A stretch of DNA of 64,000 bases from Azolla caroliniana (lineage: Eukaryota > Plantae > Polypodiophyta): NCBI GenBank assembly GCA_043228905.1, contig JBHGNT010000003.1:744001-808000 (forward strand). The letters are read 5' to 3'. Every line of letters begins with the position of its first letter. Within the stretch, counting starts at the first letter, position 1. A program made the position numbers and the translations under genes. Positions 2,790-14,500 of the stretch are shown piece after piece. Below the pieces are notes generated by a model. The model saw only the letters and a program-made list of their open reading frames with translations, did no database searches and was not told the DNA's origin.

Positions 2790-3365
2790 GTAAATGGCAT
2801 TTGCAAAGTTCAATTACCATCAACACAATTATTAATGGTTTTCTTCTAATAAATGAAGCACATATTTACCATAAGGTATCTTGTTGTGCAACATACATCT
2901 TTAAAAACCTCTTTTATTTGAAAAACAACAAGAGTTTTAAACATGAACACGATGTGTTGTATTGAATTGATGTAAAAAATAGAGTTTTCATCATAACTCT
3001 ATACAATATATTAAATTCATGTTCAAAGTTTTTTTACCGGATTTAAATAATAATAATAATAATAAATTAAGCTTGAGTTCATTGAAAAACCAGATTTTTC
3101 ATCACAATTCAATACAATGTATCGAGTTCATGTTTAAAGTAATTTTTTCTAATTTAAAAAAAAAACATTTTCAATTTGTTTCAATTTTTTTTATTTTTTT
3201 TCAAATTTTTTTTGTTTCTTTTTGTTTCTTTTAATTTCTTTTATTTTTTTTATTTTTTTTATTTTTTATGGAAAAAATAATAATTTTAAACATGAACTTG
3301 ATACATTGTATCGACTTGTGATAAAAACTCAGGTTTTTTCATCACTTATCAAAGCTCAAAAACAA
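2790..3365. repeat. Left arm of a long diverged inverted repeat (partner 8335-8890)
   Basis: 2790 gtaaatggcatttgcaaagttcaattaccatcaacacaa is the near-perfect reverse complement of 8851-8889. Reverse-complement similarity continues for about 570 bp. Confidence 0.88.
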
Positions 3366-3519
3366 AATTCTAAGACAGAGACGAAATTAGTACTAAGAGA
3401 GAAATATTAGTACTAAGAAGAATTTAAGGTGTAGAACACTTGAGAAAAGAAGAGAGAGAGAGAGTGAGAGAGAGAGAGGGACTGAGAGGGAATGATGATG
3501 ACATGAGTTAATCTACGAC

Positions 3520-5294
3520 GTATCGAGTTCATGTTGAAAGTGTTATTTCCGATTTATTTTTGTAAAATAATTACATTTTTTCCTATTTTATTTTGGTATT
3601 TTGTTTTTTTCTCTAAAAAGCTTTGAGCTTTAATAAGTGAGGAAAATAATATTTTATGTATTACAATGTATCGTCTAATGGTCAAGAGCTTGACCCATGT
3701 AGTAGAATGTCATGGGTTCAAGTCCTACATATCACGACATGAACGAAGTTAACTTTTTTACATGAACTCGATACGCCTTTTCAACATGAACTCGATACGG
3801 CGTATCGAGTTCATGTTTAAAGTCTAACTTTTTTACATGAACTCGATACGGCGTATCGAGTTCATGTTTAAAGTTTTATTTCCGATTTATTTTTTTAAAT
3901 AATTACATTTTTCCTATTTTATTTTGGTATTTTGTTTTTTTTTCTAAAAAACTTTAAGATTTAATAAGTGATGAAAATAATATTTTATGTATTACAATGT
4001 ATGGTCTAATGGTTAAGAGCTCCACCCATGTAGCACAAGGTCAAGGGTTCAAGTCCTAGCATATCATATCATCAACTAAGCTAACATTTTTACATGAACT
4101 CGATACCCCTTTTCAACATGAATACATGAACTCGATACGGCGTATCGAGTTCATGTTTAAAGTTTTATTTCGGATTATTTTTTTTAAATAATTACATTTT
4201 TTCCTATTTTATTATGGTGTTTTGTTTGTTTTCTAAAAACAAATTAAGCTTTAATAAGTGATAAAAATAATAGTTTATGTATTACAATGTATGGTCTAAT
4301 GGTCAAGAGCCCCACCCATGTAGCAGAAGGTCATGGGTTCGAGTCTTACTATATCATGTCATGAACTAAGATAACCTTTTTACATGAACTCGATACCCCT
4401 TTTAAACATGAACTTGATACGCCGTATCGAGTTCATGTTTAAAGTTTTATTTCAGATTTTTTTTTAAAAATAATTACATTTTTTCCTATTTTATTATGGT
4501 GTTTTGTTTTTTTTCTAAAAATAAATTAAGCTTTAATAAGTGATAAAAATAATAATATATGTATTATAATGCATGGTCTAATGGTCAAGAGCTCCACCCA
4601 TGTAGCAGAAGGTCATGGGTTCGAGTCCTACCATATCATGACATATAAAAAAGTTAGCTTTTTTACAAGAACTCGATACTAACTTTTTTACATGAACCCG
4701 ATACGGCGTATCAAGTTCATGTTGAAAAGCTAACTTTTTTATATGAACCCGACACGGTGTATCGAGTTCATGTTTAAAGTTATTTCGGATTTTTTTTTAA
4801 AATAATTACATTTTTTCCTATTTTATTATGGTGTTTTGTTTTTTTTCTAAAACAAAATTAAGCTTTAATAAGTGATAAAAATAATAATATATGTATTATA
4901 ATGCATGGTCTAATGGTCAAGAGCTCCACCCATGTAGCAGAAGGTCATGGGTTCGAGTCCTACCATATCCTGACATATAAAAAAGTTAGCTTTTTTACAA
5001 GAACTCGATACTAACTTTTTTACATGAACCCGATACGGCGTATCAAGTTCATGTTGAAAAGCTAACTTTTTTATATGAACCCGACACGGTGTATCGAGTT
5101 CATGTTTAAAGTTTTATTTCGGATTTTTTTTTTAAATAATTACATTTTTTCCTATTTTATTATGGTGTTTTGTTTTTTTTCTAAAACAAAATTAAGCTTT
5201 AAGAAGTGATAAAAATAATATTTTATGTATTACAATGTATGGTTTAATGGTCAAGAGCTTGACCCATGTAACATAAGGTCATGGGTTCGAGTCC
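3520..5294 (+). repeat. Tandem array of six ~280-335 bp units, each with a tRNA-like A-box/B-box cassette, a downstream oligo-T run and a palindrome
   Basis: A-box TGGTCTAATGG-like at 3671, 4002, 4292, 4574, 4906, 5240. B-box GGTTCRAGTCC-like at 3715, 4046, 4336, 4618, 4950, 5284. Palindrome aacatgaactcgatacg-g-cgtatcgagttcatgtt, e.g. 3783-3817. Confidence 0.92.
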
Positions 5295-5321
5295 TCACGG
5301 TCTAGAACTCACAATTCTTTG

Positions 5322-5369
<48 letters not shown>

Positions 5370-5954
5370 ATTCTCACTCTTAATCTCACATTCACCCACC
5401 GATTGTATACCGTTCGCACTCCTTGTATTGACCTCACGGTCTAGAACTCACAATTCGTAGTAATTTCTATGGAGGACCAATCCACAGAGACGTGAACCCA
5501 CGATGGCATATGATCGACGCCCTTCGAGTATCCACTTCATGTCGAGTTCCCTCATTTCAAGTGGAAGGCATTTGCAACGGCATCATCGGCATCCCAACAT
5601 GCCTTCAACATATTATCTCTCACTTCCTTACATCTTTTCATTGTAAGCATGGGACTACATTCGGTAGCCATGCATTCCCTTTTGTCTCTTTTAGTATGTG
5701 TGCATATGGACTACTTTCAATAGTTGGCATTTTGCATAATCTTAGTATTTCCTTTCCTTTCCAATGCACGGGATTACATTGTAGCCGGCATTTGTATTCA
5801 ACATATGTTCTACCCTTCCGTTGTAACCAATATACCTTGCATCACTCTCCCTCCCACTCACTTTCTCTTGCATGATATCCTTCCCCCATAGTCTCTCTCT
5901 ATATTAACTTTACCCCTCTTTTATCTTTACCTAATTCTCAACATACCCTTACCT

Positions 5955-6420
5955 ATTTTCAACTCTACCCCTTCCCTAACTTTTCGATATTTCCACTATA
6001 CCCTCCCCCTTACTTTTCCTTATCTTTAACTCTACCCCTCCCCTAACTTTTCCATATTTTCACTATACCCTCCCCCTTACTTTCCCTTATCTTTAACTCT
6101 ACCCCTTCCCAAACCTTTCCATATAATTTTTCACTATATCCTCCCCCTTATTTTTCCTTATCTTTAACTCTACCCCTTCCCAAACTTTTCAATATTTTCA
6201 CTATACCCTCCCTCCCCCTTACTTTTCCTTATCTTTAACTCTACCCCTTCCCTAACTTTTCCATATTTTCACTATACCCTCCCCCTTACTTTTCCTTATC
6301 TTTAACTCTACCCCTTCCCTAACTTTTCAATATTTTCACTATACCCTCCCCTTACTTTTCCTTATCTTTAACTCTACCCCTCACATTTTAACTTTTAGCA
6401 TCCTCCCCTAATTCAGTTTT
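5955..6420. repeat. C-rich minisatellite, ~66-71 bp unit, about 6-7 copies
   Basis: Unit tttaactctaccccttccctaacttttccatattttcactataccctcccccttacttttccttatc recurs at ~6024, 6092, 6163, 6233, 6301, 6367. Confidence 0.9.
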
Positions 6421-7143
6421 CTCCTATTTTCCAATTCTACCCCTCACCTCTTAATTTTTAGCCTCTTCACCTCATTCTCCTTTTTCCTATTTTCTAATCC
6501 TACCCCTCCCCTCACCTTTTATTGTTTCCAAATTTTATTTTATTTTATTTTTTCTAACCATCACCTCCCCCTTATTTTTCCTAATTTGATCTTCTACCCC
6601 TCCCGTTACTTTTTCATTGCCACTCTAACATTACCCCTACCTTTCCCTAACTCACGCCAAGTATAGGAAACGATTTGGGTGCGCTTGAATCGTTCTTGGT
6701 GATCTTTTCACTTCATTCCCACTTTGTCAATTTACTCTACCCCTGTCTCGTTCACTAATTTCAATCTACCCCTTTCCCCCTTCCTTTTTTCCAGAATTAC
6801 ATTCATACCCCTCCCTCTTTTAGTAAATTTCTCGTACCCCTCCCCCTTTCATTTTTCTTAATCTCACTCTACCCTTTCCTTCTCCACTTTAATTTCCAAT
6901 ATACCCTCCAATTCTTCCTACCCCCCTCCTTTTTTCAAAGATCTCCATACATTCTAACGTACTTCACCATCCCTAACTCCCACCTCACACACTTCTCTCT
7001 TACCCTTCCTCTCTCTTTCTCTCTCACACTCCCCTACATGTTTTTCAAATAACCCCAAAAAATCTTCTATCCCACACCAAATATATCAAACCCCATATCT
7101 CCTACATCATCAAATTTGAACACACACACACACACACACACTA

Positions 7144-7199
<56 letters not shown>

Positions 7200-7232
7200 G
7201 CACACACACACACACACACATCCTTATCTTCC

Positions 7233-7241
7233 CTATATAAA
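7233..7241 (+). promoter_or_regulatory. TATA box immediately upstream of hammerhead 1
   Basis: ctatataaa consensus, downstream of (CA)n(CT)n(CA)n and ~15 nt before helix I of the ribozyme. Confidence 0.5.
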
Positions 7242-7255
7242 CCCCTCCAATTCTA

Positions 7256-7314
7256 AATGGTCTTGTGCACTGATGAGCTCCGTAGGAGCGAAACTAGTTG
7301 CCACATCGACCATT
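7256..7314 (+). ncRNA. Minimal type I hammerhead ribozyme (copy 1, one-nucleotide irregularity at the cleavage junction)
   Basis: CUGAUGA (7270-7276), helix II gcucc-gua-ggagc, GAAA (7290-7293), palindromic ACUAGU helix III, helix I aaugguc..ugugca / ugc-c-aca..gaccauu. Confidence 0.82.
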
Positions 7315-7388
7315 TCTTTGTATTACTTTTTAAGTTTCTTAATATGAATTAGTCTTTAGTCTATTTCTCTCTCTCTAAACTTTGTACA

Positions 7389-7432
<44 letters not shown>

Positions 7433-7523
7433 ATTCTCACTCTTAATCTCACATTCACCCACCAATTGTATACCGTTCGCACTCCTTGTATTGACCTCAC
7501 GGTCTAGAACTCACAATTCTTTG

Positions 7524-7607
<84 letters not shown>

Positions 7608-7691
7608 ATTCTCACTCTTAATCTCACATTCACCCACCGATTGTATACCGTTCGCACTCCTTGTATTGACCTCACGGTCTAGAACTCACAA

Positions 7692-7744
7692 TTGGTAGCA
7701 CTGATGAGCCCCGTAGGGGGCGAAACTAGTTTGCTCATGACCAT
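7692..7744 (+). ncRNA. Minimal type I hammerhead ribozyme (copy 2)
   Basis: Helix I uggu-agca / ugcu-caug-acca, CUGAUGA (7701-7707), helix II gcccc-guag-ggggc, GAAA (7722-7725), palindromic ACUAGU, cleavage triplet GUU (7729-7731). Confidence 0.9.
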
Positions 7745-8034
7745 TACCCATCGTATTGTAATTGTTTCCTTTTTCTTAATGAAAATTAGTCTCCTTCTTA
7801 ATCTCTCCCTCTTTCTAATCTAGACTATTTAGCTTATGGTTATGTTTTACCTTGTTTCTAATTTTAATGTTAGTGATTAATCCCTCGTCTCTCTCTCTCT
7901 CTCTCCCTCCCCTTCCTCTATCTCTTATTATGCCTCACTTACACCAAGTTTGTCAAATGATTTGGGTGTGCTCAAATTATTCTTGGTGTTTCTTTTCACT
8001 TTATCCCCTCTTGCACTTAATCGTAAACCCTTTT

Positions 8035-8145
8035 ACCCTCTAAACCCTAAGCCCAAAACAAACACTAAACCCTAATTCTTAAACCCTAACCCTAAACCTA
8101 AACCTAAACCAAAACTCAAACCCTAATTCCTAAACCCTAAACCTT
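8035..8145. repeat. Degenerate interstitial plant telomere-like repeats (CCCTAAA/CCTAAA)
   Basis: taaaccctaa...aaaccctaaccctaaacctaaacctaaacc...cctaaaccctaaacc. Confidence 0.8.
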
Positions 8146-8334
8146 TTTTCTCTATAACTCTACATCTTATATATTGCACCCACCGATTGCCTACCGTCCG
8201 CACTCCTTGTTTCGACTTCACGGTCCAATTGAAAAGTTTAATTTTGGATTTTTTTTTAAAAATAATTACATTTTTTTCTATTTTATTTTGGTACTTTGTT
8301 TTTTTTTCTAAAACAAAATTGAGCTTTAATAAGT

Positions 8335-8890
8335 GATGAAAAAACCAGAGCTTTTATCACAAGTTGATACAATGTATCAAATTGATGTTTAAAAAATAAA
8401 ACAAAATCAATAAAAAACTATAAAAAATTGAAAAAAATTGAAACAAAATTGAAAACAATTAGAAAAAATTACTTTAAGCATGAACTCAATACATTATATC
8501 GAATTGTGATGAAAATTATGGTTTTCTAGATGAACTCAAGCACAATTTATTTTTTTATTTTTTTTTAAATCTAGTAAAAAAAACTTTGAGCAAGAATTCA
8601 ATACATTGTATGGAATTATGATGAAAACTCTATTTTTTACATCAACTCGATATAACATATCGACTTAATGTTTAAAATCTTGTTGTTTTTCAGATAAAAG
8701 AGGTTTTTTAAACATGAACTTGAATCGTACTAAAATCTTTGTTTTTACAAGAGAAAAAGATGCATATCGATAGTGCAAACAAGTATGCTGTACAATAAGA
8801 TACTTTATGGTAAACATGTGCATCATTGATTAACAAAAAACTATTAATAATTGTGTTGATGGTAATTGAACCTTGCAAATGCCATTTACA
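8335..8890. repeat. Right arm of the long inverted repeat (partner 2790-3365)
   Basis: Reverse complement of the left arm, e.g. gatgaaaactctattttttacatcaa (8620-8645) versus ttgatgtaaaaaatagagttttcatc (2967-2992). Confidence 0.88.
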
Positions 8891-11534: not shown

Positions 11535-14500
11535 TGCTAGGGGTGGTAGTCTTGCACGGCTAGACCGCATATACATCAGCTCGTCCCTTGAAGAGTTGGG
11601 GGGCTCCTTCGCTATCTTGGCAAGTCTTACCTTCTTTGATCACCAGCTGATGAGACTAGACCTTAACCCACCCCGCGGTAGCAAGGGGAGTCTCAATGTG
11701 AAAATCCCCACAAAGATCATGAAGAGTGCAAAGGTGAAAGCAGGGTTGCAGAGCGTACGACAGGAGACCATTGTGAGTGAATCGGCCAGTGAGGATTTGC
11801 AGAAGAAATTGGCCCTCTCCTCCTCCTTTTTACAACAGGAAACCAAGTTGGCCCTCTAGCAGGCTAGAGCCATTGAAACAAAATTATGGAAGTCCGTTGC
11901 GGCCGCGCAACGATTGCTACAAGCAGACCCTAGTTGCAATTGGTCTAGAGCTAAGTTGGAGGAAGCAAAGATGAAGCTGCGGGAAAGGACGTTGGAGAAG
12001 AACCGAATGTTATTTCCAAGGACCGCAGCATGGTGAGCTAGAATAGACAACAAGGTCAACCATCATTTCTTTCACTCCAGGGCACCCAAGGGTGGTGGTG
12101 GACATATACAAGATCTGGGCAAACAAGATGGCTCAATAACGGAGGCCACACAATACTATCGCGACCTGCCCGCACCCATGCATATGCGGCAAATCATAGA
12201 GTTGGCCGAGAGGGCGTTGGCTTGCATTCACCCCAAGGTAACCCATGAGATGGAAGTTGTGCTCGATAGCCCCATTTCTCGATTAGAACTCTCAGAGGCA
12301 CTTAGGGATTTGCGGAGAGGAGCATGCCCAAGCCCCGATGGTCTCTCACGAGATTCTTTGGGAAACTGTCATCCCGTCATTGGAAGTCGGGATTCAGGAG
12401 ATTTGGACCTCAGGAGCGATGCCAACTGTCTTGGCTGAGGGGATGATCTATCTCATCCCTAAAGCGGCAGGGCGAAGCCTTGAGTTGCGCCAATGGTGTC
12501 CAATCACGATCCTTAATACGGTATACAAGATACTCGCAAAATTCCTAGCTAGGCAGATAGCAAGCTTCCTACCAGACATCATACATGAGAATCAAACAGG
12601 GTTTATCAGGGAGTAGGTGTATCTTTGATAATGTGTTGCTTCTCTGGGAAGTTATGGCATTGGCAGATCGCGTCGTATCAAGCTCGTCTATTCTGATGTT
12701 AGACTTTGAGAACGCCTACGATGGGGTGTTATGGCCCTTTTTGGAAAGAGTGATGAGAGCTATGGGCCTTCCCCAACAATGGAGGAATTGCACTTCTGCA
12801 CTCTATCGGATAGGTACCAGTAGCATGTTGGTATCTGGTGCTAGGGGCCACGCCTTCCAACTACATCGCTCAATGAGGCAAGGTTGTCCCCTAGCCCCAT
12901 ATCTCTATCTATTTGTAACTGAGGCTTTCTCTGCCTACTTACAAGCACCAAGCAGCGGACTGAGGGGATTGCCCATCCCCAATGTGACTGAGGATCTTCT
13001 GTTATTTGAATATGTCGACGATATGGTCCTTTTCTTGCAGGGCGATGATGCAAATTGGCAACGAGATGGACATCTTGTTGATGACTTTTGTCAGGCTGTT
13101 GGTGCCAAGGTCAATTGGGATAAAACCCAAGGCCTTTGGATTAACGAACAAGAGAAGCCAAGGTGGCATCCCCATGTTGATTTTGCATGGGTCCCTGATG
13201 GGAGGACATTCAAGTACCTTGGATTTATGATGGGGAGGGCAATCCCCAAGGGAGCGCAATTGTCCCATGTGCCAGCCAAACTAAGCAAGAAGTTGAACCA
13301 ATGGAGTAGGTCTAAACTATCCAAGCTGGTAGGGTTCTTATTGTGAACCAAGTGATGCTCGCCACCATGTGGTACTCAGTCTCCTACTGGATTATGAACC
13401 AAGTATGGTAGGCCTTGGCCTGACTCCTTGAATTGGTGTTGCACGAGCGAATCCCACCCAAGATGGCTTGTCATCCGGAGGAGAGGGTCACGAACTCCAT
13501 CTTGCGAGCATGGTGTCACGTACAACATCATTTGGTCAAGCACACGCCGGAGACACTAATCGAGTGGTCTAGAAAACCATTATTTTGGAACCCTCAAGTG
13601 CAAACAAGTGACAACATGATGTTAGGGCAACTTAAGGTCCTAGAATGGGGAAAGCGGGCGCAAACAGGTCTCCACTCTATAGATGATTGGAGACACATGG
13701 TGGCATTAGGAGGATCCCAGGAGGTCCCATTCCCTCCCCTCAAGGGAGCCATGAAAATGCGGAGATTGATAGTTGAGGCAGTTGATAGGGTTCCGATGGG
13801 GGAGGTGAGAGAAGATGCTTGGTTCAGTTTCTTTGATGAGGCTGGAAGGGTTAAGTTGCTGAAGGGTGCGAGCGAATCAGGAAGAGATACAATTTTTGGG
13901 AAGAGTAAGAGTAGGGGCTCTTGGCACCCAATCCGCGTGGTGGCGCAGGTTGATAACATCTGGAAGACAGACCTAGATGTTGCTAAGGTGGAACCCCATT
14001 GGAAGTTATCGGTATATGGTTGTTGTCCCCTCGTAGAACTAGAATGGGACCCAGGGGATTTCAGGTAGAAACATGATGGTAGATTTCGCCATTTCTTCGA
14101 GTACAACACTAAACTGGGCCGGACTTTTCAACTGTAGTTAGACGGCCCCTTAAGCAATGGTTAGTGTACATTGGGCATCCCTGATGAGGTGCTCATTACC
14201 TTTTGGAAGGGTCTCTGGCGTCTCCACATGCCGGGAAAGATAAAGTTTTTTTGGTGGCAAATCAGTCATAATGTGGTTCCCGTTGGTGAATGGCTAGGTA
14301 AACGTGGCGGCCCGTTAGGCTGCCCTCTTTGCCATTCATCTATTGAGACTTTGAGGCATTGTCTGTGGGATTGCCCTCAAGCTCAAAAGGTATGGAATAG
14401 AGTGACTCGCCTCCTTGCGGCATGTGAAGTGGAAGGAACAACATCGTGGAGTGTTGCGGCATGGATTGATCACTCCGTTGATAGGTGAACGGACGCCTTC

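Follow-up and report, generated by a model that had tools for sequence, protein, structure and literature searches.

Two damaged hammerhead ribozymes in a gene-less insertion of Azolla caroliniana that probably derives from endonuclease-less Penelope-like elements

The occurrence of hammerhead ribozymes in Penelope-like elements (PLEs) is already known. The closest described relatives of the locus considered here are the endonuclease (EN)-deficient PLEs of the Athena/Coprina type (Gladyshev & Arkhipova 2007, as cited in PMC8557442), which have been described as carrying reverse-complement telomeric repeats on the same strand (PMC8557442). In Selaginella moellendorffii, the terminal repeats of such PLEs (pLTRs), a repeated end module, bear type I hammerheads (Cervera & de la Pena 2014, PMC4209133). 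Gene-less derivatives of PLEs have been described in animals (PMC7229834; bioRxiv 10.64898/2026.07.22.740005), and the hammerheads of metazoan PLEs and of non-LTR retrozymes are characterized by a palindromic, vestigial helix III and by the need to act as double hammerheads (PMC4209133; PMC7229834; bioRxiv 10.64898/2026.07.22.740005). These non-LTR retrozymes are ORF-less and non-autonomous, share only the end module of PLEs, consist of short tandem monomers (about 170-400 nt) with one ribozyme each, and give circular RNA. The plant LTR retrozymes are likewise non-coding plant retroelements with two hammerheads on one strand, but their hammerheads are of type III and reside in true LTRs, and the elements have a tRNA-Met PBS, a PPT and 4-bp TSDs (Cervera et al. 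2016, PMC4918200).

The window analysed here is a stretch of 64,000 nucleotides from the fern Azolla caroliniana (contig JBHGNT010000003.1, positions 744,001 to 808,000), in which two hammerhead motifs, copy 1 and copy 2, are found on the same strand. With a probability of roughly 0.8, these are genuine type I hammerheads from the end module of plant EN-less PLEs, both of them damaged, in a gene-less chimera of two subfamilies, E1 and E2. The family shares with EN-deficient PLEs the type I topology, a helix I with an internal loop, a helix III in which 1-2 bp close a palindromic loop, and a hammerhead module located beside a reverse transcriptase (RT) that lacks an endonuclease; partial tandem copies, the absence of TSDs and same-strand telomeric repeats in reverse complement are further common traits. 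Unlike those elements, the window element has no ORF of its own, its telomere-like tract does not directly adjoin the ribozyme but follows it at a distance of about 300 nt, and its family has a conserved TATA box 34-38 nt upstream of the core. It differs from the Selaginella PLEs in its host and in that the best named RT homologues of its family are just 38-40% identical. The family resembles the metazoan elements in helix III and in its gene-less derivatives, but its units measure about 1.1-2.2 kb. None of the LTR retrozyme hallmarks is present in the window element.

Two hammerhead motifs and the structure of their family

A scan of both strands of the 64 kb with the pattern CTGATGA-N(8-24)-GAAAC returned exactly two matches, both on the + strand (7270-7294 and 7701-7726), with 431 nt between the starts of the cores. 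The conserved core, C3-U-G-A-N-G-A9 together with G12-A-A14, is present in both (7270-7276/7290-7292 and 7701-7707/7722-7724), as is the self-complementary AACUAGUU (7292-7299 and 7724-7731). Helix II is formed by GCUCC 7277-7281 and GGAGC 7285-7289 in copy 1, and by GCCCC 7708-7712 and GGGGC 7717-7721 in copy 2, so that the two helices differ by a single, fully compensated change, U7279-A7287 versus C7710-G7719. In copy 2, A15.1-U16.1 is followed by an unpaired H17, the last nucleotide of a GUU triplet (G7729 U7730 U7731), after which UGCU pairs with AGCA 7697-7700 just before the core; cleavage is predicted between 7731 and 7732. Copy 1 is one U short at the equivalent place. The initial annotation, which had described two same-strand cores 431 nt apart, a covarying helix II, the palindromic segment kept in both copies and the GUU triplet of copy 2, was correct on each of these points, the first of them being evident from direct reading as well as from the scan.

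Relatives of the two motifs were collected in two ways. Metagenome contigs scanned with the core pattern yielded 67 loci (numbered with the prefix L below), about 45 of which share flanks with the window at 70-96% identity, the flanks being homologous over hundreds of bases. As the search pattern fixed the core and ACUAGUUUG, these loci are uninformative on the conservation of those bases. A view free of this pattern bias is offered by Logan contigs of four runs, of uncertain contig type, that were aligned to 7225-8232 and among which neither joints nor pile-ups of ends were seen; contigs of both subtypes, copy 1-like and copy 2-like, are present in the four runs, and no variant of ACUAGU is listed among them, a segment that the metagenome pattern had fixed. 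Another 22 of the metagenome loci (L001, L002, L004, L007 and other JAAUYA01 contigs) form a second, unrelated family that has the same GAAACUAGUU|UG end, a helix II of UUCA-loop-UGAA, a helix I of CCCA/UGGG and no TATA box, and that probably comes from another organism. A motif on the minus strand of L018 (offset 1224 of the reverse complement), composed of CUGAAGA, helix II GCUCA/UGAGC and GAAAC-AUG-U with the palindrome ACAUGU, may be a further variant with a minimal helix III.

The structural alignment of the family comprises 27 distinct sequences. The pairs of the core, helix II, proximal helix I and helix III are formed in 92% of cells, compared with 33-41% when partners are slid. Helix II has both-sided changes in three of its five pairs while 94% of its cells remain paired; pair 30:42 occurs 17 times as U-A and 10 times as C-G, and the helix is closed by G10.1-C11.1, as G-C, in all 27. 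Compensated changes are found in five pairs overall, and the observed covariation score was reached by none of 500 shuffles, a statistic that is inflated by the kinship of the copies. Distal helix I is indel-rich and could not be aligned by MAFFT, and was therefore assessed by swapping partners between copies: the duplex energy averages -13.3 kcal/mol with a copy's own 3' flank and -7.8 with the flanks of other copies, and the own-partner mean was reached by none of 10000 permutations, the kinship of the copies again inflating the test. Changes on both sides of helix I are also visible by eye, as in GGUC/GACC versus GACC/GGUC, GGCCAC/GUGGCC and GAGGAUG/CAUCCUC. As judged from this alignment and the partner swap, the family ribozyme is of type I and is maintained through selection on structure, and an intact member has a long, interrupted helix I, a helix II of 4-6 bp and a helix III made of no more than A15.1-U16.1 and the palindrome ACUAGU.

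Against this background, the expectation of stem covariation among copies holds for both helix II and helix I across the 27 sequences, and the assignment of the motifs to type I, Penelope-style hammerheads with a vestigial palindromic helix III is borne out by the family covariation, by the fit to a type I Rfam model and by the PLE-linked module described below. The related claim that helix I still pairs in spite of its differing sequence stands for copy 1, with a duplex energy of -14.2 kcal/mol. For copy 2, the energy is just -6.3 kcal/mol, the weakest of all 27, because the distal 5' strand was lost at a junction at 7693/7694.

That the two motifs might be chance matches in a low-complexity, C/T-rich region has a next to negligible probability. 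Shuffled windows contain a mean of 0.2 pattern matches, with at least two matches in 3 of 100 shuffles, and there is no Rfam call at gathering score, both of which would be compatible with chance, but the reading is refuted by dozens of relatives with conserved cores and compensated stems and by flanks that are homologous over hundreds of bases. A search with the Rfam hammerhead models, which the initial annotation had proposed, gave no match at gathering score for either window copy; the similarity that it did reveal, in E-value mode, is sub-threshold in both, the best model being Hammerhead_3 at 23.4 and 22.8 bits versus a threshold of 48.5. This preference for a type III model, together with GUC and GUA triplets at the aligned site, would agree with type III hammerheads of a plant LTR retrozyme, in which AAUUGGU/ACUAGUU forms helix III and cleavage follows GUC or GUA (7262, 7697). 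Such an assignment is nevertheless very improbable: the scores are half of the gathering score, the Hammerhead_3 alignment forces a type III fold in which only 0-2 pairs are left for helix I, and the upstream strand of the family covaries with sequence downstream of GUU and not with ACUAGUU. Moreover, no tRNA-Met PBS is found within two mismatches anywhere in the element, nor an LTR pair or a TSD, for which reasons an LTR retrozyme was rejected and the analogy with plant retrozymes that had been drawn earlier is not upheld. Full copies of the family instead align best, at 24-32 bits versus a gathering score of 52, to Hammerhead_HH9 (RF02275, canonical type I, amniotes), with which they share the interrupted helix I with its internal loop, helix II and the core, but which has a 3-bp helix III with a loop where the window family has ACUAGU. 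No copy, whether in the window or among the intact relatives, reaches the gathering score, a shortfall that is due to helix III being vestigial and reduced to ACUAGU.

Anatomy of the insertion and its probable Penelope-like kin

The two type I hammerheads lie within an insertion that interrupts a tandem array of tRNA-like units of about 330 nt, which stops at 5293 and restarts at 8233 (self-BLAST). Compared with an intact array unit, no TSD is present at the insertion junctions and about 95 nt of one unit are missing, as would be expected of an endonuclease-independent insertion at a DNA break. The longest ORF inside the insertion encodes 127 aa and has no Pfam match. The insertion is strongly strand-asymmetric (GC skew -0.71), and a stretch of about 2 kb is nearly free of G on the + strand. 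The units of the surrounding array (3520-5293 and 8233-8400) each contain a tRNA-like T-arm, GGTTCGAGTCC, and a long palindrome, and ARAGORN detects no tRNA in this flanking array. Elsewhere in the window, the sole ORF longer than 220 aa (12585-13346, +) matches RVT_1 (E 1.7e-19) and is probably a fragment of another retrotransposon.

Table 1. Features of the insertion and of related contigs (window positions unless a locus is named)
Feature	Position	Strand	Remarks
Whole ORF-less insertion, putatively Penelope-like, non-autonomous	5294..8229	+	both ends placed to within about 4 nt
5'-truncated terminal repeat (end of B, ctttgtgca, (TC)n, B0)	5294..5456	+	99-100% identical to 7495-7693
Non-coding E1 body	5457..7233	+	colinear with family copies in metagenome loci; parts: internal region, minisatellite, box A, C/T-rich stretch, (CA)n(TC)n
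Minisatellite of E1 body	5954-6520		
Box A of E1 body	6646-6724		
TATA box TATATAAA, putative promoter	7234..7241	+	36 nt upstream of C7270
Hammerhead copy 1, subfamily E1	7255..7315	+	direct reading, Rfam E-value mode, pattern scan
Copy 1 helix I, 5' strand	7255-7269		
Copy 1 core CUGAUGA	7270-7276		
Copy 1 helix II	7277-7289		
Copy 1 GAAA	7290-7293		
Copy 1 ACUAGU	7293-7298		
Copy 1 helix I, 3' strand	7299-7315		
Local tandem duplication [ctttgtRca-(TC)n-B]	7380..7693	+	B1 7425-7516, B2 7600-7693
Hammerhead copy 2, subfamily E2	7694..7745	+	direct reading, Rfam E-value mode, pattern scan
Copy 2 proximal helix I	7697-7700 with 7732-7735		
Copy 2 core	7701-7707		
Copy 2 helix II	7708-7721		
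Copy 2 GAAA	7722-7725		
Copy 2 ACUAGU	7725-7730		
Copy 2 U17	7731		
Copy 2 helix I, 3' strand	7732-7745		
3' part of subfamily E2	7746..8229	+	tail, box A' 7933-8012, (CCCTAAA)n 8040-8144, diverged B3 8149-8229
266-aa ORF	L017:1365-2162	-	
266-aa ORF	L005:629-1426	-	
266-aa ORF	L038:4779-5576	+	

The insertion is best read as a head-to-tail chimera in which a copy of E1 would be followed by a piece of E2 (Table 1). The E1 copy (5294-7693), which carries copy 1, is a pseudo-LTR-like copy of 1.09 units whose ends are nearly identical and whose period is 2201 nt, 5293-5366 being equal to 7495-7568 at 100% and 5326-5460 to 7564-7698 at 99.3% (self-BLAST). Its body is matched, in conserved order and at 79-96% identity, by L061, L048, L037, L063, L053 and L060; the C-rich minisatellite within it has a period of 67/138 nt and about 6 copies at 88-90% identity, and it belongs to the 2-kb stretch poor in G. 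The E2 piece (7694-8229), which carries copy 2, corresponds to the 3'-terminal 536 nt of a related element; 7696-8143 is matched at 77-90% by L013, L014, L003, L022 and L043. A tRNA gene with anticodon GUG (64.5 bits) lies about 650 nt downstream of the family hammerhead in L013 (1456-1527, +). An alternative reading of the segment ctttgtgca (5317, 7517), that it belongs to the 5' flank of copy 1, was rejected, as the segment is the end of tail 1 (ctttgtaca, 7380); the duplicated segment is therefore a plain tandem duplication.

The link to PLEs comes from relatives that do have genes. The same TATA-hammerhead module is found between head-to-tail units of ORF1 and RT in L047, L011, L062, L017 and L067, and this shared module of about 100-160 nt is the full extent of the link between the window element and autonomous relatives. 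In these units, ORF1 encodes 650-930 aa and ORF2, the RT, 658-685 aa; a weak match to RVT_1 is the only Pfam match of ORF2, and no endonuclease domain, GIY-YIG included, was found in it by Pfam. Among the 157 homologues of this RT, the best named ones are proteins of Cryptomeria, Selaginella and Ginkgo with 38-40% identity, and distant homologues carry GIY-YIG (PF01541). The combination of GIY-YIG and RT is the architecture typical of EN+ PLEs. In a PDB profile search, prokaryotic RTs (E 3e-11) rank above TERT (2e-3), and the assignment of the RT to PLEs is one by homologues and domain architecture rather than by phylogeny.

Several further traits of these contigs deserve description. In L047, L011, L054 and L062 (for example L011:853-3141 and 3129-5114), the two ORFs have 13 nt in common, the RT being read in the -1 frame. 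One autonomous subfamily has a third ORF, which encodes 266 aa, has no match in Pfam and is situated after the RT ORF and before the hammerhead. L049, which shares the tail and the internal region with the window element, was considered as an autonomous partner and rejected, its large ORF being that of an L1-type LINE (APE endonuclease, RT and zf-RVT). L1-type ORFs of this composition adjoin family copies in L049 (3758-8101) and in L044 (6636-10469), as neighbours and not as partners.

In the window itself, the PLE features are the (CCCTAAA)-like tract at 8040-8144 (+), a telomere motif of plant type, the partial-tandem copy, the 5' truncation and the lack of a TSD. The orientation of the tract is constant in the family: in 8 loci (CCCTAAA)n follows the hammerhead on its own strand at a distance of 290-560 nt, the opposite orientation does not occur, and the contig of L005 terminates in nine (CCCTAAA) repeats. 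Of 45 family copies, 40 have a TATA-like motif 34-38 nt ahead of CUGAUGA, and such a motif is also present in loose ends of related contigs. By the features compared, the window element is probably a non-autonomous derivative of EN-less PLEs.

Origin of the 431-nt interval and predicted activity

Both window copies are damaged, each in a different way. In contigs related to copy 1, an extra T follows 7297 (3314 of 3321 depth units in run X3, and also in run X4), the metagenome relatives all read GAAACTAGTTTGCCAC, although the search pattern itself required TTTG, and the family consensus at this site is GAAACUAGUU|UGCCAC. Read against these relatives, copy 1 has an intact core and has lost nucleotide 17 through the deletion of one T, in agreement with the earlier observation that it is one nucleotide short at the cleavage junction. 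The damage to copy 2 lies upstream. Upstream of 7696, contigs matching copy 2 depart from the window sequence and have a TATA box and AAUGGUCAU instead, as does L013, and AAUGGUCAU is fully complementary to AUGACCAUU (7737-7745); contigs matching the B repeat go on as the window does at 5457. This divergence on both sides indicates that 7693/7694 is a junction between two subfamilies, at which the distal 5' strand of helix I of copy 2 and its TATA box have been replaced by B2. The sequence GTAG at the junction is common to both partners. The E2 piece starts 7 nt before CUGAUGA, a position that in L013 (90% identical) is 30 nt after the first T of the TATA box. The junction could record a reverse transcriptase that reached the 5' end of its RNA and then switched templates; a later recombination or deletion at the GTAG microhomology would be an equally possible origin.

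The 431-nt interval is accordingly composed of the tail of one element, the duplicated (TC)n-B segment and the junction to the other subfamily. Most of it is the duplication 7380-7693, in place of which family copies such as L048 have a single B. The junction is found in no contig of the four runs and at no metagenome locus, and a spacing of about 431 nt is likewise absent elsewhere in these runs and loci, where cores on the same strand are 1097, 1149, 1755 or 2156 nt apart. As reconstructed from these comparisons, the 431-nt spacing is a by-product of the subfamily junction and the local duplication and not a ribozyme-bounded unit.

The defects bear on what the two copies could do. Under the hammerhead rules, copy 1 is without the unpaired nucleotide 17 next to a paired helix I, and helix I of copy 2 has just 4 bp and three chance pairs, and neither copy should cut well alone. 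In the minimum free energy fold of 7250-7750, the ACUAGU tracts of the two copies are paired with each other (probability about 0.82), and the helix I strands also pair across copies, 5' of copy 1 with 3' of copy 2 (about 0.91). This predicted fold has the geometry of a double hammerhead, in which copy 1 would supply its intact core and complete 5' strand and copy 2 its intact site, and a transcript spanning both copies would, in silico, yield a single composite hammerhead with its cut after U7731. In the reciprocal composite the two defects, in nucleotide 17 and in distal helix I, come together, so that at most one cut is predicted, after U7731, and no release of a 431-nt RNA. The initial annotation had suggested a double hammerhead that excises an RNA of about 430 nt; the pairing of the ACUAGU tracts is retained in the predicted fold, while with one cuttable site the excision is unlikely.

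A more ambitious alternative is that the interval is a working, retrozyme-like unit, in which the two motifs, combined in a double hammerhead, are both active and free a circularisable RNA of about 431 nt that can be copied into DNA. Both cores are intact, the ACUAGU tracts are predicted to pair at about 0.82, and small-circle-forming, non-autonomous PLE derivatives are known in animals (PMC7229834; bioRxiv 10.64898/2026.07.22.740005). The alternative is nonetheless improbable, if less so than chance or a type III origin: copy 1 is without nucleotide 17 of the family consensus, the composite that would be needed for its site also lacks distal helix I, the interval is made of a two-subfamily junction and a local duplication, and neither its spacing nor its junction recurs in any other contig or locus. 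An animal-type tandem retrozyme was rejected on similar grounds, there being no short monomer, the 431-nt interval not being a repeat unit, and the spacings of relatives ranging from 1097 to 2156 nt.

The preferred reading of the window copies as damaged members of a PLE end module leaves a role for their intact relatives. For an intact family ribozyme, cleavage would be predicted to follow GUU and to be slow in the monomer, or else to take place in a double hammerhead, and, by analogy with the known family, it would process multimeric or read-through transcripts to unit length. Transcription, if driven by the conserved TATA box 34-38 nt upstream of CUGAUGA, would start inside the 5' strand of helix I. 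It may be, as a tentative and on balance doubtful extension, that the ribozyme is crippled in the element's own transcript and complete only on upstream read-through, and that the defective copies of the window complement each other. Transcripts would then be terminally redundant over a short, R-like segment between the start site and the GUU cut, with processing confined to a single end; the E2 border at 7694, exactly 30 nt past the TATA position of L013, would fit a jump of the RT from the 5' end, and the two defective copies would amount to one composite hammerhead that cuts only after U7731.

Significance for hammerhead-bearing plant elements

The locus adds a plant lineage to the few with documented Penelope-type hammerheads, EN-less PLEs and gene-less derivatives; the published plant cases of Penelope-type hammerheads are essentially those of Selaginella. 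It also provides a well-covarying alignment of type I hammerheads that is missed by the Rfam models because helix III consists of the palindrome only. The window copy is a fossil-like chimera whose value is that of an annotated example, one in which template switching or recombination between subfamilies would have created what appears to be a twin-ribozyme unit. What possibly goes beyond published work is confined to the conserved distance from the TATA box to the core and the possible start of transcription inside the ribozyme. This fixed TATA-to-ribozyme distance could newly inform how such elements control the site at which their RNA is cut.
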